A DNA stretch of 64,000 nt from Anthoceros angustus. Taxonomy: Eukaryota > Plantae > Anthocerotophyta. Positions 12,569-64,000 of this stretch are shown here, piece after piece (positions within the stretch are counted from its first letter, which is position 1; each line of letters opens with the position of its first letter). The stretch spans positions 1,674,001 to 1,738,000 of the forward strand of contig MU008169.1 of assembly GCA_010909165.1 (NCBI GenBank), written 5' to 3'. Position numbers and translations under genes: made by a program. The notes under the pieces are model-generated. The model made no database searches and had not been told where the DNA came from. It saw only the letters and a program-made list of their open reading frames with translations.

Positions 12569-15500
12569 ATGGCTGAAACTGTGACCAAGCTATGTCATCA
12601 AGGCCATCTCACTGAGGCCGTTGAGGCTTTGGGACTTCTGGTGCAGACAGACAGTTGTATTTCCACATCTCTGTTTTACACAGTCCTGAAGAACTGTCTT
12701 GTGAGGAAGGATCTTGTTCTGGGTCGCCGCGTTCATGCTCTCACACTGAAAATGGGGTATGAGTCGGATGCATTCTTGGGCAATCACATTCTGCGAATGT
12801 ACGCTTGTCATGGCAGGTTGCAAGACGCGATGGCTGTGTTCACCATGGTTGACCAACCAGATGTCTTCATGTGGTCCTCTATAATTTCTGCGCATGTTAA
12901 ACACGGGGAGGACAAGCAGGCCATAGAACTGTATCATCGGTTGCGCAAGTCAAGAGTGAAGGCAGATGGGCATGTGTTTGTGGCCGCCCTTCAGGCTTGT
13001 GCAAGGGGCTCGGACTTAAAAACTGGACAGCAGGTGCATGCTGATGTGTTGGAGAGTGGCATTGAACCTGATTTGTTTGTCTGTAACTGCTTGGTAGATA
13101 TGTATGCTAAGTGTGGCAGCTTGGAAGAGGCTCAAAGAGTGTTTGACGGACTTGATCGACCAGATGTGGTGACGTGGACTGCTCTGATTGCAGGGTATTC
13201 TCAGCAGGGCATGGGCCAGGAAGCCCTTCGTCTGTACAGTGTTATGCAAGAAGGCAGGACTGTGCCCAATTCCGTTACTTTTGTATGCCTCTTGCAGGCA
13301 TGTGCAAGCGTGGGCACCTCTGCTTTGGAGAAGGGGAGGCAGCTTCATGTGCAGATTAGAGAACAAGGACACCAAGCTGATGCTTTTGTAGCCAACAGTT
13401 TGATAAGCATGTATTCAAAGTGTGGCAGCGTAGAAGATGCTAAGAAAGTGTTTGATGGACTCGCTCGAAAAGATGTGGTGACATGGAATGCCATGCTAGC
13501 AGGGTATTCCCAGCAAGGCATGGGCCTGGAAGCATTGCGTCTGTACAGTGATATGCAAGAAGATGGCCTGGCTGTAGCAGATTCTGTCACATTTTTGTGC
13601 CTGCTGCAGGCATGTGCAAGCGTTGGCATGCCAGCTTTGGAGAAGGGGAAACTTCTTCATGCACAGATTAGAGAACAAGGACATCATGCTGATGTCTTCA
13701 TAGCGAACAGTTTGGTGAACATGTATGCAAAGTGCGGCAGCTTGGAAGAAGCTCTGAGAGTCTTCGATGGACTCAGTCAAAAAGATGTGGTGACGTGGAA
13801 TGTGATGATAGCAGGATACTCTCAGCAGGGCATGGGCCAGGACGCCCTTCAACTGTACACTGCAATGCAAGAAGAAGGGATGGCTGTACCCGATTCTGTG
13901 ACATTCGTGTCCTTACTTCAGGCATGTGCGAGTGTGGGGCCCTCAGCTTTGGAGAAGGGGAAGGAGCTTCATGGTCAGATAACAGAAGGAGGGCATCAGG
14001 CTGATGTCCTCCTAGCCAACAGTTTGGTGAACATGTATGCAAAATGTGGCAGCCCAGAAGATGCTCGTGGAGTTTTTGACAGACTCGTCCAAAAGGACGT
14101 GGTGACATGGAATGCCATGATAGCAGGGTATTCGCAGCAGGGCATGGGTCAGGAAGCCCTTCGTCTGTACAGTGCTATGCAAGAAGATGGAAGGGCTGCA
14201 CCCAATTCTGTGACTTTTGCATGCCTTCTGCAGGCATGTGCAAGTGTGGGCACCCTGGCTTTAGAGATGGGGAAGCAACTTCATGCAGAGATCAGAGAAA
14301 GGGGACATCAAGCTGATGTGTTTGTAGCCAGCAGTTTAGTGAACATGTATGCAAAGTGTGGCAGCCTGGAACACGCCCAGAGATTATTTGACGGGCTCAG
14401 ACAAAAGGATGTGGTGATGTGGAATGCCATGATAGCAGGATATTCCCAGCAGGGCATGGGCCAGGAAGCCCTTCATTTGTACACTGTTATGGAAGAAGAA
14501 GGGATTGCGGTGCCTGATTCGGTGACATTCGTCTGTCTCCTTCAGGCATGTGCAAGTGTTGGGACCGCAGCTTTGGAGAAGGGGAAGCATCTGCATCAGC
14601 AAATTAGAAAGCGAGGGTACCAAGCTGATGTGTTTGTAGCCAACACTTTAGTGAGCATGTATGCAAAACATGGCAGCCTAGATGATGCTCAGAGCCTGTT
14701 TGATGGACTGGGTCAAAAAGATGTGGTGACGTGGAATGCCATGATAGCAGGTTATTCCCAGCAGGGTATGGGACGGGAAGCCCTTCGTCTTTACAGGGCG
14801 ATGCTAGAAGAAGGCATTGCCATACCAGATTCTGTGACATTTGTGTGCCTCCTGCAGGCGTGCGCAAATGTTGCAGCCTTGCATATGGGAAGGCAGCTAC
14901 ATGTGCAGATCCAAGAACAAGGGTTTGAAGCTGATGTGTCTGTAGCTGGCAGTTTAATAAACATGTATGGAAAGGCTGGGAGCATGATTGATGCACAACG
15001 GGTGTTTGATGCGATGCCGGAAAAGGATGTTATTGCCTGGAGTGCACTTATTGCAGGCTACACGAGTCAAGGAGACAGTGAAGTGGTTTTTGACTTGTTC
15101 CAGAGAATGAAGGAGGATGGTATACAGCCAGTAGGCATCACATTTCTTAGTGTACTGACAGTATGCAGTCACGTGGGGCTCGTCAACAAGGGACGAGAGT
15201 ACTTTGAGGCTATGAGCAGACACTACGGCATCACTCCCACAGTGGAGCACTTCACATGCATGGTGGGTCTCCTGGGCCGTGCTGGTCGACTGGACGAGGC
15301 ACTATCTCTGGTGAGGTCAATGCCTCTGCCACCTAATGCGGCAGTTTGGCACACTCTGTTGGGCGCTTGTCAGAAGTGGAGCAACGTGGAGGTGGGGTGC
15401 CTCGCTTTCAATGAAGCAGTGAAGGTAGACAAGAACCACGGAGCAGCATATGTGGCTATGTCAAACATATACTCTGCTGCCCAGATGTGGGAGCAGGCAC

Positions 15501-15676
15501 ATGAGATGCAGACGACGAGAAAGACAAGAAGGGCATGGAAGCAGCCAGGTCAGAGCTGGTGGACAGACCTGGATGGAGTGGTGCATAGTTTCTTGGTTGG
15601 TGAGAAGAAGCCTTCTCCTATTCGTGTGCAGCTGAAACAAGTGTTTTCCGAAGTGGAGAAAGACTCGATCCAGTAA
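12569..15676 (+). CDS. PLS-class PPR RNA-editing factor (P-LL-S triplets, E1/E2, WW-type PG box, DYW truncated)
   Basis: 1035-aa intronless ORF; about 26 PPR motifs in 104-aa triplets (P 36, long L 37, S 31 aa), then E1/E2 and KQPGQSWWTD...VHSFLVG, with a stop before any HxE/CxxC motif. Confidence 0.95.
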   Translation: MAETVTKLCHQGHLTEAVEALGLLVQTDSCISTSLFYTVLKNCLVRKDLVLGRRVHALTLKMGYESDAFLGNHILRMYACHGRLQDAMAVFTMVDQPDVFMWSSIISAHVKHGEDKQAIELYHRLRKSRVKADGHVFVAALQACARGSDLKTGQQVHADVLESGIEPDLFVCNCLVDMYAKCGSLEEAQRVFDGLDRPDVVTWTALIAGYSQQGMGQEALRLYSVMQEGRTVPNSVTFVCLLQACASVGTSALEKGRQLHVQIREQGHQADAFVANSLISMYSKCGSVEDAKKVFDGLARKDVVTWNAMLAGYSQQGMGLEALRLYSDMQEDGLAVADSVTFLCLLQACASVGMPALEKGKLLHAQIREQGHHADVFIANSLVNMYAKCGSLEEALRVFDGLSQKDVVTWNVMIAGYSQQGMGQDALQLYTAMQEEGMAVPDSVTFVSLLQACASVGPSALEKGKELHGQITEGGHQADVLLANSLVNMYAKCGSPEDARGVFDRLVQKDVVTWNAMIAGYSQQGMGQEALRLYSAMQEDGRAAPNSVTFACLLQACASVGTLALEMGKQLHAEIRERGHQADVFVASSLVNMYAKCGSLEHAQRLFDGLRQKDVVMWNAMIAGYSQQGMGQEALHLYTVMEEEGIAVPDSVTFVCLLQACASVGTAALEKGKHLHQQIRKRGYQADVFVANTLVSMYAKHGSLDDAQSLFDGLGQKDVVTWNAMIAGYSQQGMGREALRLYRAMLEEGIAIPDSVTFVCLLQACANVAALHMGRQLHVQIQEQGFEADVSVAGSLINMYGKAGSMIDAQRVFDAMPEKDVIAWSALIAGYTSQGDSEVVFDLFQRMKEDGIQPVGITFLSVLTVCSHVGLVNKGREYFEAMSRHYGITPTVEHFTCMVGLLGRAGRLDEALSLVRSMPLPPNAAVWHTLLGACQKWSNVEVGCLAFNEAVKVDKNHGAAYVAMSNIYSAAQMWEQAHEMQTTRKTRRAWKQPGQSWWTDLDGVVHSFLVGEKKPSPIRVQLKQVFSEVEKDSIQ

Positions 15677-22507: not shown

Positions 22508-23676
22508 ATGGACGACGAGGAGGACGTGCCGTTGTCGGAGCTTGTGGCTATGTCGGAGCTGGCAGCGATTTCAGCCGCGTCCCGCGGGCAGGGCGAGGGC
22601 GAGGACCAGGGCCAGGCCAGCCCGCCTTCCGGCCCTACCGGCGGGCGCGGTCTCTGCGCGGGCATGCGGCGGCCATCGCGGTGGTGAAGTGGTCTCCGGA
22701 CGGGGAGTGGCTGGCCAGCGCGGGCGCGACCCGGAGATCCTGGTGTGGAGCGCCAAGGACTGGAGCGTGAAGGCGACGCTGCGGGGGCACGGCAAGGGGA
22801 TCTCGGATCTGGCATGGGCGGGGGACGGGAAGTGCATCTGCTCCGCGTCGGACGACGAGAGCGTCAAGATCTGGGACTGGGAGGCGCAGACGTGCGTGCA
22901 GACGCTCAAGGGCGAGAAGGACTGGTTCACCTTCTGCGTGGATGTGTGCCCGAAGAAGGAGCTGGTGGCGGCGGGGTCGTGGTCCGATAGCGTCAGGATA
23001 TGGCGGATCGGAAAGGGCAAGGACGTCACCTGCTCCATCCTGAAGGCGCACTCGGATCCCGTCACGGCCGTGCAGTTCAACAAGAAGGGGGACAGGCTGG
23101 TGACCAGCAGCTTGGATGGATTGTTCGTCATCTGGGACACGGAGCGATGGACGTACACGAAGCTGGTGAATGAAAACAGTGGTTTGCCTCCGGTTTCGCA
23201 CGTACAGTTCACGCCGGTGAAGAGTTCTGTGCTGGTGGCCACCATGGACAACGCCATTGTGAGTGAGCGAGGGTTCGGGTTGGACGCTGCTAGGGTTTGT
23301 CTGCATGCTTGTTAGGGTTTCGGTTGGAGATCAATTCGGGGGTTTATTCCATTGTGTCCTGAATTCTTTTTGTGGTTTCCTGTCGCAGAGGCTCTGGAAT
23401 TGGAGGACGGCGGAGATTACAAAAGAATATTTCGGCCATACGAATGAAGAATTATTTATCATGCCCGCGGTTACTGCCAAGGGGAAGTATGTAGTGAGCG
23501 GGTCAGAGGACAAGTTGGTGTACATATGGGATTTGCAGTCGAGGGTGGTACTGCAAAAGCTGACAGGACACTCTGCTGCAGTAATATGTGTTGCTTGTCA
23601 TCCATCGTCCACTCGGATTGCGTCGGCTGACTTGGCGGCGGAGGGCGGAGTGATCAATATTTGGGAGCAGGAGTAG
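22508..23676 (+). CDS. Divergent WDR5-like WD40 protein; two apparent 1-bp frameshifts; one intron (23259-23388)
   Basis: WD repeats RPY...LRGHAAAIAVVKWSPDGEWLASAG, LRGHGKGISDLAW, ILKAHSDPVTAVQFN, VVSGSEDKLVYIWDLQSRVVLQKLTGH. Adding one G at about 22615 and one at about 22722 opens the frame from ATG 22508. Confidence 0.8.
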
Positions 23677-27796: not shown

Positions 27797-28415
27797 TGCA
27801 GTCTCACGGCTCCTCCTACCCTAACACACCAGCATTGCACCACATTCCAGTCACCATTTCCAGCCTCTTCCAGCCCCAGAACAGGCGTCACAGTACGCCA
27901 CCTCCGCCGTTCGTTCAAGCAAGACGATCTGACGACGAACCAAATGGATCACATTTCCAGCAGCCGCTCCCATCGATCGATCCGAGCTAGGAGCAAGACG
28001 AATTCCAAACCCTCGCATTTGGCTTAACCCAGGTGGTTTATTCCGTAATCAGAGTAAATTTGATTAAATTCGTCATAATTAGATAACCTAATCAAGGGAA
28101 CGCCAAAATAGAACGAGAAAGATTGGAATGGAAAGTCGAAAACAAGGAAGCATGACCTATATAGGTACATACGCTTACAACCACGTCTTTGGTGCCGCAA
28201 CTTCATTTCCTATTGTTTTCAGCTAGGAACGGAGCAGCTGCGGGAAGGCTTGCGAAGGAGAAGGCGCGTTGGGACGGTAGGGTTTGCTGGCGCCGGCTTG
28301 AGTGTTGCTTGCTTGTGCCGTGTGATGGTGCGTTCTTGATGGCGGGAGGTTGCTTGTAGCTGAGAAAGTTTTGCTGCTGCGTTGCTGGCTGTTCAGATTA
28401 CGAGCTTTTGTTGCG

Positions 28416-29357
28416 ATGGATGCGAGTGGAGGCGGGAAAGCGGCGAAGGGGAAGAGCTCCAAGAGCGGGGCGGGCAACAGAGGGGGAATCAGAACCCTGT
28501 CGGACTTGCGCCGGAATGTGGAGTCAGGCAGCGACTCGGAGGGGCCGCAGGAGTACTACACGGGAGGCGAGAAGAGCGGGATGATGGTGCAGGATCCCAA
28601 CAGAGGACGGAAGGATGTGGACGCCATCTTCGACCGGGCCCGGCAGTCGGGAGCTCGGGAGGGCTTTGCACCGGCGGAGCCTGCTACGCGGAGCAGTTTT
28701 GCTGGACCCGCGCGGACTTTGGCGGGGGATCAGCGGCTGCCGGAGCCGGAGCAGGCCGCGGATGTTGCTCCCGTTTTCCACACCATCACTTTCTGGAGGA
28801 ATGGTTTTACCGTGGACAACGGGCCTTTGCGCAGATTTGATGACCCCGCCAACGCTTCCTTCTTGGCTAGCATCAACAAGGCCGAGTGCCCCAGGGAATT
28901 GGAACCTGCGTCTCATGACACTCCTGTGCATGTGAACCTTGTGAGGCGGGATGATGATTGGCAGGCTCCCAAGGAACCTAAGCAGGTTCTGGCCTTCCAA
29001 GGCACAGGGAGGACGCTCGGGGGCAGCACTCCCGCTGCGCCTCCCAGTGCCGCTCCGGCTCCCCTGACGCCTAGGGAGGCAGGGACTCAGCCGGCCATGG
29101 GGCTCGTGGTGGATGACAAGAAACCCTCGACGTCGATACAGCTTCGCCTGTCCGATGGCACCCGCATGGTGGCTCGCTTCAACCATCATCACACAGTTGG
29201 CGACATCCGAGGGTTTATTCAAGCTGCCAGGCCGGGAACTTCAGGGTCATATCAGCTTCAGACGATGGGCTTTCCTCCCAAGCAGCTGACGGATCCTCTT
29301 CAGACAATTGAGGAGGCGGGTCTCATTAGTGCCGTGGTCATTCAGCGAGGCGGATGA
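28416..29357 (+). CDS. Plant UBX-domain protein, p47/PUX3-6 type (SEP + UBX), intronless
   Basis: IRTLSDL...[21 protein letters not shown] domain ([32 protein letters not shown]), SHP box [13 protein letters not shown] domain ([18 protein letters not shown]...MGFPPKQL). Confidence 0.93.
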
Positions 29358-29718
29358 ACATCCTCATCTCGGCCCTTTTGCTCCAATTCTGATGGTCGCT
29401 TTGATTATAGGAAGTTGGATGAATTTGAGTATAGTGGGACAATTTTCTTACTAGGTCTCTGAATTGTACAGCCACAGAAGCCTGAATTTTCACGTCTCTC
29501 AAATGTTGTAGATGACGCGGAGAACTTGCACAGTTATGCAAACCCCTCTTCTTATTTCAGACACTGCGTTACTTTCATAATCCTTGGAACTCTGACACTC
29601 ATGCTTTTTGCAATTCCACGCGCAATTTTCAAGACGTTGCAACATGGGTATAGCAGCTTCTCAATGGGTTGGAAGGCATACATTTAGCACGTTACAACAC
29701 AAAACTTTAGCTCAGATT

Positions 29719-30837
29719 CTAAGCAGCAGGAGTTTGTTGCGAATCAGGCTGCCCATGATGCACATGACCGGGATTATCTAGAGGGGAAGCAAGTCCGGTC
29801 TTACCAGCCAACTCCTCGACTAACATCCTAACCCTGAGGAGGGCAGCAGGTACCGAGTCCAAAGCAGGCCTGACATCGATCACGAAAGGCCACTTAGCCT
29901 GAGCATTGTCATCATAGTAGAAATCGATGACGTAGCGCATCTCCCGACCACCTCTGTCAACCGTCCAGTCGTGACGATCAAATGGCGCACCATAACCTAG
30001 AAGCTTTTTAACATGCGCCTGAAAAAGCCATACAGAGGATGTTAGCTTGTCACTGGAATCAAAGCTTCTCAACTCATCGAACATGAACACATGCACAGAT
30101 CGTTTGCTCACCTTGGGAGACAAGTCATGAGGCCGTCCTTCGAAATACAGCAACCTCGGTTCATACTCCGCTGAGCCCGGAAAAAGCTGAGAATACAACC
30201 TCTCCCATTGCAACAATCTGTTCCACGTGCTCTCGTTCACAGCGTTGTGAGTCGTGACAACAGCTTCCATATCCCGTTCACTCACATCATCAGCCTTACC
30301 TTTCCTAACAAGGCTATTAAAAAACATCTGAGGCGAGGGATACATCCAAGTCTCCTCGGTTCCACCCTTAGGTATAGACGATTTTTGCCTGTACGTAGAC
30401 AACACCTCCTCTTGCCCGGGAGCCGGGGTCTGGTTAGCATTCTTCGGCATCCTGTTCAGAGGATTAATCTCTTCCGCAGCCTCTTTCGTGCCGTAGTAGA
30501 GGAACGACGGCATCACCCAAATATCCCTCTTAGACGGTTCCTTCCCTTGCGGATCTATCCTCCTCCCGTACACATCATACACATGAGGATGCTTGTACTT
30601 GCCCTGCCTGCTCGACTCCTCACTCTCCGCATCCCGCCCCGAACTCCCTGCTGCCCCGCTACACGCAGCTCCCCCCTCTCGACTGCAGGCCGCATCCAGC
30701 AATTTCTCCCTAGCTGCACCTGTCACCGGACAGTCCGCACCAGGGAACGCCTTGTAATACAAATCATGCACTCTGTCGGGCACGCTTTTGCTCCGCTTCT
30801 CGGCTGGAGGACCTTCCACACTCCCCGCGTTTCCCAT
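29719..30837 (-). CDS. HCCS: Holocytochrome c synthase / cytochrome c heme lyase (System III); one in-frame intron 30019-30111
   Basis: CP heme motif (DCPV), NPLN-MP, SSIPKG...WMYPSPQMFFNSLVRKGK, HNAVNESTW, FEGRP..LSPK, PFDRHDWTVDRGG...RYVIDFY, IDVRPALDS. Confidence 0.95.
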   Translation of the reverse strand: MGNAGSVEGPPAEKRSKSVPDRVHDLYYKAFPGADCPVTGAAREKLLDAACSREGGAACSGAAGSSGRDAESEESSRQGKYKHPHVYDVYGRRIDPQGKEPSKRDIWVMPSFLYYGTKEAAEEINPLNRMPKNANQTPAPGQEEVLSTYRQKSSIPKGGTEETWMYPSPQMFFNSLVRKGKADDVSERDMEAVVTTHNAVNESTWNRLLQWERLYSQLFPGSAEYEPRLLYFEGRPHDLSPKVSKRSVHVFMFDELRSFDSSDKLTSSVWLFQAHVKKLLGYGAPFDRHDWTVDRGGREMRYVIDFYYDDNAQAKWPFVIDVRPALDSVPAALLRVRMLVEELAGKTGLASPLDNPGHVHHGQPDSQQTPAA

Positions 30838-31153
30838 GTAGAACCAACTCTATCCCCGATCAGCACACACAGGCGGTCCAGCCCGGGAATCCCTAACTCC
30901 AACACCACCCCTCGCTACCCAGACACCTGCGCAATCACAGCACAAAAAAACCTAGACTCGTCATCCATATACCCACCCGACACGCAGAAAGGAAACAAGC
31001 ACCACGAAATCCTCAGAAAGCAACAAGAAAGGAATCACGCACCATAAGCCAGCAGTGACATGCGCACCGCTCGCATCTGCTGCCAAAATCTCCTAACCAC
31101 CGAGCCTGCAACAAGCCGCGGCACAGCAAGGGCAACCGAAACGCAGCATCCGG

Positions 31154-32659
31154 TTGAGATCGCACAGCAGGCCATGCCAGGCCGAAACAGGGCCGCGTCT
31201 CACACGAATTATTGGTCCGCGTCTCATACGAATTATCGGCCGGCGTCTCAAACGAATTAATCCGCCTCCGGCCGCTGTTGAGCTTGAGCCACCGATTCTC
31301 ATGCCGCCGGGGATTAGCTCTAGCTGTGATGTTTATCCCCGTCCCAGTTGGAGTCCATACAGAGCCGCGTGGCAGCCTCCCGGACATACCACGCTGGCAG
31401 CGCCACTTGGCAAGGAGCTGGTGCGGGCTAGCGCTATCCTGCAGCAGCAGATGCAGATGCAGCTGCAGCTGCGAGCTTGCCTGAGGGAGCTGGCGAGGCG
31501 AGCGACGAGGAAGCAAGGGAAGATGGCGATGGCGGCGGCGCAGGCGCAGGAGCCGGGGAAGGATATGCTGCGGGTGCTGCAGGGCACGCAGGTGCAGCAG
31601 CTCGTGCAGAACAAGGGGAGGCTGATCGAGGTGCCGTACTCGGCCACGGTGAGCGACGCGCTGAACGCAATGCTGGCGCACAACGTGATGGCGGTGCCGG
31701 TGGCGGCTCCCCCGGGGCACTGGATCGGGGCAGGGGGGACGATGATCATGGAGTCGGACAAGGTGACGGGGGAGGTGCGGAAGCAGTACATCGGCATGGT
31801 GAGCGTGTTCGACATCCTCATCCACATCTGCGACACCCGGTTCGACCCGGACGTGGAGACGCGGCTGGTGCGGCCGATGACGACGGTGATCGGCCACACG
31901 CTGGAGGGCCTCAGCATGTGGACCATCTCCCCGAGCACGACCGTGTACGAGGCCATGGAGCCGATGAGCAAGGGCATCCACCGCGCGCTGGTCCCGGTGG
32001 TGAGCCGGATGGAGCACGGCGCGGGCGTGGAGCTCACGGAGTTCTCCCCGGGCTACCACATGCTCACGCAGACGGATCTGGTGCACTTCTTGCTGGACCA
32101 CGACGCGGAGCTCGGGGGCTTTCTGTCCTCGCACTCTGTGTCTCATGTCGGAGCTGTGCAAGACGACATCGTCGCCGTGCCGGGGAACTTCGATCTGCTC
32201 CGCGCTGTGTTCCATCTGTGGAACAACGGGATGACGGCGGTGGCGGTGCTGGAGCCGGCGCCGGAAGGAGTCGAGCCGGAGTTCGCTTCCGGAAAGGGGA
32301 AGAAGGCGCTGTGTTCTTTCTCCGCCGGCGATCTGAGAGCCTGCGCTGCGGAGACGCTCCGGCTATGGTGCCACAGGCCGCTGCTGGAGTTCTTGCAGCG
32401 GGCCGAGGTCGCCAAGCGTTACGGTCTTGGAGCGGCCTCGATGCAGGAGGGGAAGCTGCTGGACGCGGCTGCCATGCCCAGGCGTCTGGTCGCCTGCTCC
32501 CCGAACGCAACCCTAGCCGAAGCCATGCGGAAAGCCCTTGAGAGCAAAGTGCACCGGGTTTGGATCACGGATGAGGAAGGTCTGCTGCTTGGCGTTGTGC
32601 ATTTCAGCGACATACTGCGAGTAGTTCGCGAGCATGCCAGAGAGTCCAGACACCAGTGA
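31154..32659 (+). CDS. PV42: SnRK1 gamma-like CBS-domain protein (PV42 type), intronless; true start may be about 31523
   Basis: LIEVPYSATVSDALNAML...VMAVPVAAPPGHWIGAGG.MIMESDK.TG.VRKQYIGMV; four CBS repeats ending VHRVWITDEEGLLLGVVHFSDILR. Confidence 0.88.
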   Translation: MRSHSRPCQAETGPRLTRIIGPRLIRIIGRRLKRINPPPAAVELEPPILMPPGISSSCDVYPRPSWSPYRAAWQPPGHTTLAAPLGKELVRASAILQQQMQMQLQLRACLRELARRATRKQGKMAMAAAQAQEPGKDMLRVLQGTQVQQLVQNKGRLIEVPYSATVSDALNAMLAHNVMAVPVAAPPGHWIGAGGTMIMESDKVTGEVRKQYIGMVSVFDILIHICDTRFDPDVETRLVRPMTTVIGHTLEGLSMWTISPSTTVYEAMEPMSKGIHRALVPVVSRMEHGAGVELTEFSPGYHMLTQTDLVHFLLDHDAELGGFLSSHSVSHVGAVQDDIVAVPGNFDLLRAVFHLWNNGMTAVAVLEPAPEGVEPEFASGKGKKALCSFSAGDLRACAAETLRLWCHRPLLEFLQRAEVAKRYGLGAASMQEGKLLDAAAMPRRLVACSPNATLAEAMRKALESKVHRVWITDEEGLLLGVVHFSDILRVVREHARESRHQ

Positions 32660-32842
32660 GTGAGCGAGCGCCGGTTCCTCCAGGTGGTGTACATAGGAGG
32701 GGGTGATCCTTCATCTGTGCATATCCGATTTGGTTAAGCGAAGGTGTGAAGTGAGGCGATGCAGCAGTACTTCCTGTCACCAGATCAGCGAGCTCGTTTG
32801 CAGCTCTAGAGATCGGGATTCCGGCGCTGTGGAGCATGCATG

Positions 32843-52728: not shown

Positions 52729-54290
52729 ATGGTGAAGCTTCTGGTGCCGCTGCTCCTGCTGGCGATAGTGGCGTGGGCGCCCCTCGCCCAAGCCTCGCCA
52801 CCCACCGGGCTCCCCCTCGGCGGCCTCCTCGCCACCCACCGCCCACCTAAAATCCTCGTCAGCGGCCATGTCTTCTGCGACCAGTGCAGGATGGGGCTCA
52901 ACTCCCTCCTCACCGTGCCTCTTCAAGGTGAACTTCGCCTCCTTTCGTTGTCGGGCTTCCCAATGCTGATGCCCCGTGTGTGTGTGTCTCAATTGGGTAT
53001 TGGGTGGTGCTCTTGTTCGTTGTTGTCGGCATGTTCGATGTTCCATGCTCTTCGTTTGTTGCCACCCTGTAGAGCAGTTTGGGCTCTTGTTGGTAGCTTG
53101 TTTGTGAATACATTGCTGTGTTGGTTAGCTTGTTTCTGGATCCGGTCCTTTCCAGTCTTCGAGAATGCACTGATTCATGTGCTATGCCTTTGTAAGCTAG
53201 TGTTCGTTTGGAATGTCAGCATGTAACAGCCTTGGTTTGGTCTTCATTGTTGTGTAGCTTGCATATGAAACCTGCTCTTTGGATCCAGTCTTCCAATGTA
53301 TGGAACTTTCATGTGCCTCTTAGTCTATTTCTGAATCCGGTGCTTTCGTGTTGCAACATGGAGTCATCAGTTTAGTATGCTTGTTTGTGCGCTTGTTTCT
53401 GTTCCAGCTTTCAACACCTGTTAGGCGTCGTTGCCGGCTTGCGAAGCCACAGGCTCCTGACGAAATTGTGGGTGTGGGTGTGTGGGTGTCTCAGATGCCG
53501 AGGTGGGAGTCACGTGCGTAGATGTGTACGGCTTCGTCACGTACAATGCAGTGGGCTACACGAGCAACGACGGGGCGTTCCAGATACCTCTGGACGATTT
53601 GCCGCTCATCTATGGAGTGAAGGGGTGCAAAGCGCATCTGGTGTCATCCTCCGACTTCCAGTGCAACATGGCCTCCTCTGTTGGGGGAGGGAACTCCGGG
53701 GCCAAGTTGGTGCTGAATTCCCGGTCTCTGGAAGAGGTGATATTCACCTCGGGACCATTCGCTTACCGCCCATCAAAGCCCCTGCTTGTGTGCTCCCACT
53801 CTCCTCCCCCTCCAAACCCAACACACCATAACCACATCCCTGCCCCTACCGGTGGTGCTGTGCGTAGGATTCCAAACCCACCACCAGTTCCCCACCACTT
53901 GATGTCTCCTCCTCCTTCACCACCATCTCCACCTACAAATCCCAAGTACAGGTTTCCTCCCCCTCCTGCCTCTGGAGTGCACAAGGCCATCCCTCCTCCT
54001 CCTCACCATGCTGGGAAGCAAAAGGGCAAGTCCCCTCCACCTCCTGAGAAGCAGAAGCAAGTGGGCAATACTTCCCTCCTCCTCCTCCTCCTCCTCCTCC
54101 TCCACACCATGGACACGAAGGGCACAAGTCCCCCCCTCCGCCATCTCCTGGACAGGTTTACCACCCTCCCCCTCCACCACACCACGGCCACCAAGGGAAG
54201 ACGTCACCCAAGTCCAAGCCCAAGCCCAAGCCCAACAAGAAGCCTGACAAGCCCCCGTTGCCGGCTCCACCACCCAACTTCCGGAGCTGA
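52729..54290 (+). CDS. Pollen Ole e 1-domain / extensin-like proline-rich cell-wall protein; intron 52928-53494; apparent 1-bp frameshift at about 54063
   Basis: Signal peptide; VSGHVFCDQC; DAEVGVTC...GAFQIPL...CKAHLVSS...C; then SPPPP/His-Pro repeats. Adding one G to ggg at 54063-54065 continues QYFPPPPPPPPP...KPKPKPNKKPDKPPLPAPPPNFRS*. Confidence 0.88.
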
Positions 54291-54751
54291 GCTGGTTCCA
54301 AGGTGGCCAGGCAAGCTCAACGAAAAGCTGCCTCCTCGCCTGACGGCATGGCTGCTCCTTACATGCGCAGCCAGTTATGTCATCGTTGCTTGCAGAAGCT
54401 GGAGCCAGTAGTATAGGATAAGGTGCCGGGAAACCGTCTTTCTGCGAAGTGGGAAGGCAACAAATTTGTGTGGCCCGTTACGGACTAGCCGTAAAAATGT
54501 TTGTATGGCTCACAGCCTGTAACGCTCTTGGCTCATCTGAAGCACACATTTCCGACATGTCCGTGTGCCAGCCAAGTATACTGTCTCCGGGTGTGCGTTC
54601 TATCCAATGCCATACTGCTCATTGTCTTCAGTGGGAGCAACGTTCTGCGATTCTATCCTGCAGCCATAGAAACAATGCGAAACGTTAGCCTAACGTGGAC
54701 TGGTTACATTTCTAAGATTAAATAAGCTTTAGCCGAAGCTTTGACGGCTAC

Positions 54752-61483: not shown

Positions 61484-64000
61484 CTAGCCCGGAAAAGAAG
61501 GAATGGAATTGATACACGGCCATGATCTCCACTTGAAGTACTGTAATGAAGGCATCACACGAACATGTTCTTTCCCTGGACACATAAACCCTACTTGCAT
61601 CCTTGACGACGCGAACTTCGTTGCCATTTGACAATCAACACAACCCCGCACATTTAGAGCAGTAGAAATGGGGGCTCCTTTGGATGTATTATTGATGCCG
61701 GATGCAAAACTAAGCTTGTCGGTGTGGCCACACAAATGAACATCCTCTCGTCTACCATCAGACGAGTCCAGATGTGACACATTCCCTTTTTCCTTTGTTT
61801 TGACAAAGATCTCTTCCAGATCCCCAACCAAAAAACTATGCACCAGCCCGTCCATGTCTGTCCACCAGGTCTGACCGGGCTGCTTCCATGCTCTGATTCT
61901 TTTTCTCCTGACCTGCATCTTCTGTGCCTCATCCCACATGTGGGCACCCGTGTATACATTGGACATCAACACATATGCTGCAGCATCTCTGTCGTCTAGC
62001 TTCACTGCTTGGTCAAACGCATAGCGTCCCACCTCCACGTTGTTCCACTTTTGACAAGCTCCCAACAGAGTGTGCCACACAGCAGCGCTAGGCAGTACAG
62101 GCATTGTCCTTATGACAGTTAGAGCCTCATCCAGTCGGCCTGCACGGCCGAAGAGATCCACCATGCATGCATAGTGCTCCACATCGGGGGTGATGCTGTA
62201 GTTTCTACTCATGGCCTCAAAGTACTCTTGCCCCTTTTTCACAAGAGTCCCATGACTGCATACTGTTAGTATACTCAGGAAAGTGATTGCGTCTGGCTGT
62301 ATGCCATTGTCTCTCATTCTCTGTACCAAGTCGAAGACCCGTTTACTGTCTCCTTGGGAGCTGTACCCTGCAATTAGTGCACTCCAGGCACCCATGTCCC
62401 TGTTGGGCAGCACATCAAAGACGCGCTGTGCATCAACCATGCTCGCACACTTTCCATACATGTTTATCAAACTGCCCGCCACAAAGGCATCCTCTTGAAG
62501 CCCTTGTTCTTCAATCTGCGAATGCAACTGCCTTCCCAGGTGCAACGATGCCACACTTGCACATGCCTGAAGGAGGGATACAAATGTCACAGAATCAGGT
62601 ACAGCCATGCCTTCGTCTTGCATAGCAATGTACAGATGGAGGGCTTCTTGCCCCATGCTTTCCTGGGAATACCCTGCTATCATGGCATTCCACACCACCA
62701 CATTTTTTTCACCAAGAGCATCAAAAACGGTACGAGCGTCTTCTAAGCTGCCACACTTTGCATACATGTTCACCAAACTGCTGGCGACATACACATCAGC
62801 TTGAAGCCTTCGCTCTCTAATCTGCACATGAAGCTGCTTCCCCATCTCCAAAGCCGGGGTACCAACAACTGCACATGCCTGTAGGAGGCACACAAATGTC
62901 ACAGAATCAGGGGTGACCATGCCTTCTTGTTGCATATCTCCGTAAAGATGAAGGGCCTCCTGCCCCATGCCCTGTTGGGAATATCCTGCCATCAAGGCAT
63001 TCCATGTAACGACATCTTTCTGACCAAGCGTGTCAAACACTCTCTGAGCATCCTCCAAGCTGCCACACTTTGCATACATGTTCACCAAACTGGTGGCCAC
63101 AAAGCCATCAGCTTCATGTCCTTGCGCTCTGATCTGGGCATGCAGCTGCTTTCCCATCTCCAAACCCTGCGTGCCCACAATTGCACAAGCCTGCAAGAGG
63201 CACACAAATGTCACCGAATTGGGTACAGCAACGCCTTCTGCTTGCATAGCCCTGTAGAGACCAAGGGCTTCCTGACCCATACCCTGCTGGGAATATCCTG
63301 CAATTAGAGCGGTCCACGTCACACCCTCTTTCTGAACAAGTCCATCAAACACTCTCTGAGCATCTTTCAAGCTGCCACACTTAGCATACATGTTCACCAA
63401 ACTGCTGGCAACAAACGCATCAGCTTCATGTCCTTGCTCTATAATCTGCGCCTCCATCTGCTTCCCCTTCTCCAAAGCTGGGGTTCCCACACTTGAGCAT
63501 GCCTGCAGGAGGCACACAAATGTCATGGAATCAGGTACAGCCAAGCCATCTGCTAGCATGGCACTGTAAAGCGAAAGGGCTTCCATGCCCATCCCCTGCT
63601 GGGAATACCCTGCTATCATGGCAGTCCACGTCACCACATCTCTTGGCCCAGGTCCATCAAACACTTGCCGAGCACCTTCCACACTGCCACACTTTGCATA
63701 CATGTTCACCAAACTGCTGACAACAAACACATCAGCTTCATAGCCTCCTTCTCGGATCTGGGCATGTAGCTGCTTCCCCTTCTCCAAGGCTGGGACACCC
63801 ACACTTGCACATGCCTGTAGGAGGCACACAAAGGTCATGGAATCGGGTGCAGCCATGCCTTCTTCTTGCATATTGCTGTAAAGACGAAGGGCTTCCTGTC
63901 CCATGCCCTCCTGGGAATACCCTGCTATCAAGGCAGTCCAGGTCACCACATCTTTTTTACCGAGGCCATCAAACACTCTCTGAGCGTCTGCCAAGCTGCC
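61484..64000 (-). CDS. PLS-class PPR RNA-editing factor, paralog of 12569-15676, with a degenerate DYW:WW domain; 5' part beyond the window
   Basis: Same P-LL-S triplets, E1/E2 and KQPGQTWWTD, then LCGHTDKLSF...NVRGCVDC..ATKF; the frame is open to the window edge. Confidence 0.95.
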   Translation of the reverse strand, partial: GSLADAQRVFDGLGKKDVVTWTALIAGYSQEGMGQEALRLYSNMQEEGMAAPDSMTFVCLLQACASVGVPALEKGKQLHAQIREGGYEADVFVVSSLVNMYAKCGSVEGARQVFDGPGPRDVVTWTAMIAGYSQQGMGMEALSLYSAMLADGLAVPDSMTFVCLLQACSSVGTPALEKGKQMEAQIIEQGHEADAFVASSLVNMYAKCGSLKDAQRVFDGLVQKEGVTWTALIAGYSQQGMGQEALGLYRAMQAEGVAVPNSVTFVCLLQACAIVGTQGLEMGKQLHAQIRAQGHEADGFVATSLVNMYAKCGSLEDAQRVFDTLGQKDVVTWNALMAGYSQQGMGQEALHLYGDMQQEGMVTPDSVTFVCLLQACAVVGTPALEMGKQLHVQIRERRLQADVYVASSLVNMYAKCGSLEDARTVFDALGEKNVVVWNAMIAGYSQESMGQEALHLYIAMQDEGMAVPDSVTFVSLLQACASVASLHLGRQLHSQIEEQGLQEDAFVAGSLINMYGKCASMVDAQRVFDVLPNRDMGAWSALIAGYSSQGDSKRVFDLVQRMRDNGIQPDAITFLSILTVCSHGTLVKKGQEYFEAMSRNYSITPDVEHYACMVDLFGRAGRLDEALTVIRTMPVLPSAAVWHTLLGACQKWNNVEVGRYAFDQAVKLDDRDAAAYVLMSNVYTGAHMWDEAQKMQVRRKRIRAWKQPGQTWWTDMDGLVHSFLVGDLEEIFVKTKEKGNVSHLDSSDGRREDVHLCGHTDKLSFASGINNTSKGAPISTALNVRGCVDCQMATKFASSRMQVGFMCPGKEHVRVMPSLQYFKWRSWPCINSIPSFPG

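Follow-up and report, generated by a model that had tools for sequence, protein, structure and literature searches.

The 64-kb stretch of Anthoceros DNA analyzed here (the window) carries a gene for holocytochrome c synthase (HCCS) on its minus strand (30837-29719). It is very probably a nuclear System III gene of this hornwort, with three exons, which replaces the lost System I of cytochrome c maturation. The gene and its linkage, its transcription and splicing, its conserved catalytic residues and its place in the streptophyte HCCS clade were observed directly in this work. A 2024 publication had already described the replacement of System I by HCCS throughout the hornworts; the present finding is correct, not new. 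The window adds annotation-level detail for a close relative of a species covered by that study, namely the exon-intron structure, an intron in the 5' UTR, an upstream ORF (uORF), the neighbouring genes and the splicing evidence.

Gene structure and splicing

The gene appears as a 372-codon open reading frame (ORF) at 30837-29719 on the minus strand. The ORF matches the Pfam family Cyto_heme_lyase (PF01265) with an E-value of 3.6e-52 and a score of 178.2 bits, compared with a curated cut-off of 23.8, and the match spans profile positions 77-296 of 299. The ORF is uninterrupted only because the second intron of the gene, a 93-nt GT-AG intron, is in frame and stop-free. After splicing the protein has 341 aa. 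Its best protein match is the 341-aa entry 'TPA_exp: holocytochrome c synthase [Anthoceros agrestis]' (DBA44762.1), with which 331 of the 341 residues (97%) are identical. When the unspliced ORF is aligned to this entry there is a single 31-residue gap, located exactly at intron 2. Retention of this intron could insert 31 aa without a stop and result in a 372-aa isoform that escapes nonsense-mediated decay. The features of the gene and of the rest of the window are listed in Table 1.

Table 1. Exons and introns of the HCCS gene and other features of the 64-kb window
Feature	Position in window	Strand	Evidence
HCCS exon 1 (5' UTR only)	31043-31126	-	cDNA-like contig of run X1 on 31040-31126, 0 mismatches
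HCCS intron 1 (5' UTR, 116 nt, GTGCGT...GCGCAG)	30927-31042	-	skipped in X1, X12, X22; kept in DNA run X2
HCCS exon 2 (remaining 5' UTR and codons 1-242; ATG at 30837-30835)	30112-30926	-	ORF, Pfam, alignments
HCCS intron 2 (93 nt, GTGAGC...TTTCAG, phase 0, in frame, stop-free)	30019-30111	-	31-aa alignment gap; skipped in X1, X12, X22; present in X2
HCCS exon 3, coding part (codons 243-341 and TAG stop)	29719-30018	-	ORF, alignment, contigs
uORF in HCCS 5' UTR (36 codons, across intron 1)	31076-30853	-	
PUX4/p47-like gene (UBX-domain protein 4), last exon, SEP and UBX domains	28396-29357	+	Pfam; convergent to HCCS
CBS-domain protein gene (start codon approximate)	31523-32659	+	Pfam CBS; divergent from HCCS
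PLS-class PPR gene	61484-63994	-	
PLS-class PPR gene	12569-15676	+	
WD40-repeat (WDR5-like) exon	22542-23315	+	
ORF with Pollen_Ole_e_1 domain	53482-54411	+	

Four sequencing runs provide contigs for this locus; they are stored as contigs, from which transcript levels, transcript ends and rare isoforms are not readable. Run X1, from the same organism, contains a 2,607-nt contig that matches the window with 0 mismatches. Two segments are missing from it, one of 93 nt at 30018-30110 (±1) and one of 116 nt in the 5' UTR, and each is bounded by GT..AG on the minus strand. X1 was classed as RNA on the basis of its spliced contigs. Runs X12 and X22, from two related organisms that are a few percent diverged, contain contigs with the same two joints. 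In X2, a DNA run of the same sample and possibly of the sample behind the assembly, one 10,959-nt contig covers 28300-32700 and retains both introns. The spliced contigs of X1, X12 and X22 and the unspliced contig of X2 therefore indicate that the HCCS gene is transcribed, that both introns are removed, and that the gene is joined to both of its neighbours in the DNA.

The original prediction was of an intact HCCS with hallmark motifs at 29719-30837, interrupted by a spliceosomal intron. Both parts are confirmed: the first by the 178-bit match to PF01265, a CPV motif at aa 36-38 and 58 conserved residues, and the second by the 93-nt intron, which corresponds to the 31-aa gap in the alignment with A. 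agrestis and is skipped by cDNA-like contigs in three runs. The second intron found here (30927-31042) lies outside the interval covered by that prediction.

Position 31126 is a lower bound only for the start of the HCCS transcript, and the 3' UTR extends below 29719 to at least about 29662. The 5' UTR contains a uORF with a second in-frame ATG, which stops 12 nt upstream of the main HCCS ATG. A single unstranded contig of X1 (window 28396-31126) covers both HCCS and the PUX4-like gene, which are encoded on opposite strands. In X12 each transcript has a contig of its own, which ends at 29486 for the PUX4-like gene and starts at 29662 for HCCS. By these limits no more than about 180 nt would separate the 3' ends of the convergent genes, which may overlap.

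Conserved residues and N-terminus

The spliced protein was aligned with 121 homologs (122 rows in total). It carries the 58 residues that are common to at least 95% of the rows, including H197 and H258. The ten substitutions relative to A. agrestis all fall outside these 58 positions. Exon 2 encodes the CPV motif, the cap-domain motif W-x-YPS-x-QMF and the heme-ligand helix H197-x3-N-E-x2-W-x5-W-E. Exon 3 encodes PFDRHDW (containing H258), RYVIDFY and DVRPALD. There is one CPV motif, at aa 36-38, which is an N-terminal CPX heme-regulatory motif. CPX motifs are typical of HCCS.

Each of the residues H197, N201, E202, W205, W211 and E212 is common to at least 95% of the 122 homologs. They correspond to human H154, N158, E159, W162, W168 and E169 at a constant offset of +43, a correspondence that, like those that follow, rests on the residue numbers given in PMC11727520 and not on a direct alignment with human HCCS. 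H258 and W260 correspond to human H211 and W213, and the segment P254-F-D-R-H258-D-W260 is near-invariant. W164, Y166, P167, M171 and F172 correspond to W118, Y120, P121, M125 and F126 of the human cap domain. In human HCCS, His154 is the essential axial heme ligand, and the listed residues have been studied by mutation (PMC11727520). A PDB search by sequence gave no HCCS of known structure.

These results bear on the possibility that the gene is a relic, or redundant, and that System I still matures cytochrome c in this species. The gene has an intact reading frame and keeps 58 of the 58 near-invariant family residues, and its transcripts are correctly spliced in three organisms. Furthermore, no HCCS-bearing species retains System I, and hornwort mitogenomes are without ccm genes (PMC10879542). 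A relic or redundant HCCS is thus very improbable. No System I gene is present within the 64-kb window.

The window protein begins with MGNAGS (30835-30820), which fits the N-myristoylation consensus MGxxxS. N-myristoylation of human HCCS has been shown experimentally (PMC10752898, PMC4200515). A start of the form MGxxx[STAGC] occurs in 83 of the 122 homologs. This group includes the four hornwort entries and the Lycopodiales (Diphasiastrum, Huperzia, Pseudolycopodiella); of the five streptophyte algae with inspected N-termini, four have the same start. All ferns with complete N-termini, as well as Isoetes and Selaginella, start with ME instead. The loss of MGxxxS in ferns, Isoetes and Selaginella does not seem to be discussed in the literature.

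Genomic context

HCCS lies between two genes on the plus strand. Among named proteins, the PUX4-like gene matches PUX4/p47 of Riccia, Marchantia and Physcomitrium best and proteins of seed plants next; an RNA contig is spliced at 28396. RNA contigs cover the CBS-domain gene over 31734-32700 without joints. Further off are two long, intronless genes for PLS-class PPR proteins with E motifs. PLS-class PPR/DYW genes are typical of land plants. Taken together, the two neighbours and the PPR genes assign the window to a hornwort. The originally predicted location among plant genes, which was taken to argue against contamination, is borne out by the PUX4-type SEP/UBX gene and the CBS gene on either side and by the two PPR genes at a greater distance.

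In the PPR gene on the minus strand the match to the DYW deaminase is only partial, and the ORF reaches the edge of the window. The C-terminus reads HTD...CVDC compared with the usual HSE...CxDC, and has no terminal DYW; it represents an editing-factor domain that is either variant or decayed. Elsewhere in the window, an exon with WD40 repeats (WDR5-like) and a Pollen_Ole_e_1-domain ORF both resemble ordinary plant genes.

Phylogenetic origin

A maximum-likelihood tree was calculated from 40 sequences under LG+C20+F+G4, with support given as ultrafast bootstrap / SH-aLRT. The root is a single haptophyte on a long branch, and the sampling is without fungal or animal outgroups. The window protein is sister to that of A. 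agrestis (98/79) in a single hornwort clade (98/91), and the sister group of the hornworts consists of ferns and lycophytes (99/88). The land plants as a whole (100/99) are joined by the Coleochaetales (98/91), and the streptophytes form one clade (100/100). The HCCS trees of Li et al. show the same placement (PMC10879542). There are no fungal or animal proteins among the best 120 matches to the window protein, and the matches listed contain one HCCS protein per hornwort species.

One rival reading makes the sequence a contaminant, or a gene recently acquired by horizontal transfer from a fungus or an alga, instead of a native hornwort gene. In its favour, HCCS is typically found in fungi, animals and chlorophytes. 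Signs of horizontal movement of HCCS have been reported among ferns and lycophytes (PMC10879542), which adds to this concern. However, the gene is located between plant genes on one DNA contig, and the orthologs in two related organisms share both introns and the same neighbour. The hornwort clade is sister to ferns and lycophytes with the Coleochaetales next, as in the species tree, and 0 of the best 120 matches are fungal or animal. The probability of a contaminant or recent transfer is therefore negligible. The placement in the tree, together with the lack of fungal and animal proteins in the best 120 matches, fits descent within the green lineage and leaves no room for contamination or a recent transfer from fungi. 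The phylogenetic comparison of a green-lineage with a fungal origin, which had been proposed as a check on the prediction, thus places HCCS inside the hornwort clade, within the streptophytes.

Intron positions were also compared. The HCCS gene of Selaginella is intronless, and that of Adiantum is without an intron at the hornwort position, but its gene model is doubtful at the 3' end.

The order of branching, with the Coleochaetales followed by the land plants and the hornworts sister to ferns and lycophytes, would fit vertical descent. Under this reading hornwort HCCS was inherited from the common ancestor of land plants, which long carried both systems; mosses, most liverworts and seed plants then lost HCCS and the hornworts lost System I. 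We hold this scenario tentatively, as a serious possibility with a chance somewhat below even. Vertical descent with a long coexistence of both systems and transfer are the two hypotheses left open by Li et al. (PMC10879542). If vertical descent is true, hornwort genomes might retain datable relics of nuclear CCM genes.

One entry among the relatives is out of place. Phaeoceros is expected to be nearer to Nothoceros in the hornwort phylogeny. The HCCS assigned to 'Phaeoceros carolinianus' (DBA44787.1) is 94% identical to Anthoceros HCCS and only 71% identical to that of Nothoceros, and it groups with Anthoceros at 100/100. The 90% cluster of DBA44762.1 contains only that entry and the 'Phaeoceros carolinianus' entry. 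The trees of Li et al. likewise place the latter with Anthoceros (PMC10879542). The source transcriptome of DBA44787.1 (ERR2041186/7) may be mislabelled or mixed with an Anthoceros.

Proposed function and published work

In a survey of the Archaeplastida, at least 11 independent losses of System I were found, with 'all hornworts' among them (Li et al. 2024, Nat Commun 15:1548, PMC10879542). Every lineage that lost System I has an HCCS homolog, and no lineage that keeps System I has one; in hornworts both the mitochondrial and the nuclear System I genes are absent (PMC10879542). The hornworts sampled in that survey include A. agrestis (transcriptome and mitogenome MK087647), Leiosporoceros, Nothoceros and Phaeoceros (PMC10879542). 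The functional tests used fern and Chlamydomonas enzymes: either enzyme (fern HCCS, Chlamydomonas HCS) rescues yeast System III mutants, and fern HCCS also rescues an Arabidopsis ccmh mutant (PMC10879542). The same paper reports a mitochondrial location for fern and algal HCCS (PMC10879542). The original prediction that this lineage uses System III agrees with the conclusion drawn for all hornworts by Li et al. 2024 (PMC10879542), and its remark that such switches had already been reported in seed-free plants is accurate with respect to the same study.

On the basis of this literature, the expected site of action of the 341-aa protein is the mitochondrial intermembrane space. Heme would be bound through His197, the counterpart of human His154, and would then be linked to the apocytochrome c CXXCH motif through two thioether bonds. 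The enzyme probably also attaches heme to the CXXCH motif of cytochrome c1. In this way HCCS would take the place of the multi-subunit System I (ccm), which hornworts have lost according to the published survey.

The activity on both cytochromes is taken from published work, and HCCS could instead serve only one substrate (c or c1), as do Chlamydomonas HCS1 and yeast Cyc3, with a second lyase maturing the other. However, each System III user among the Archaeplastida outside the chlorophytes has just one HCCS, and both cytochrome c and c1 are substrates of the fern enzyme (PMC10879542). The matches listed, with one protein for each hornwort species, also argue against a second lyase. A one-substrate enzyme is therefore unlikely, and a single HCCS acting on both cytochromes is the preferred reading.

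Hornworts are one land-plant lineage among those that switched from System I to System III. Such a switch, in which one eukaryotic enzyme takes over from eight or more System I proteins, illustrates repeated evolution well.

Comparison with known systems

The closest known counterpart is the HCCS of A. agrestis (DBA44762.1), which has the same length and is the sister of the window protein in the tree. Given the ten substitutions between the two, the window comes from an Anthoceros species or strain different from that of the entry. DBA44762.1 is a transcript entry, to which the window adds the two introns, the uORF and the neighbours. The HCCS of the fern Ceratopteris richardii, which has been functionally tested, belongs to the same Pfam family and to the same land-plant clade (100/99); it is single copy and is presumed to act on both cytochromes. 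The Ceratopteris entry matches about 64% of the query at 57% identity, while fern proteins of fuller length are 51-61% identical. Fern HCCS are without the MGNxGS N-terminus of the hornwort proteins. With respect to human HCCS, the heme-ligand helix, H211/W213 and the cap-domain residues are all matched in the hornwort protein, but the N-terminal region of the latter is longer and of low complexity. System I (CcmABCEFH), which is found in seed plants, mosses and most liverworts, yields the same end product, cytochromes c and c1 with heme in thioether linkage to their CXXCH motif. It is unrelated to HCCS, being multi-subunit, partly encoded in the mitochondrion and of bacterial origin.
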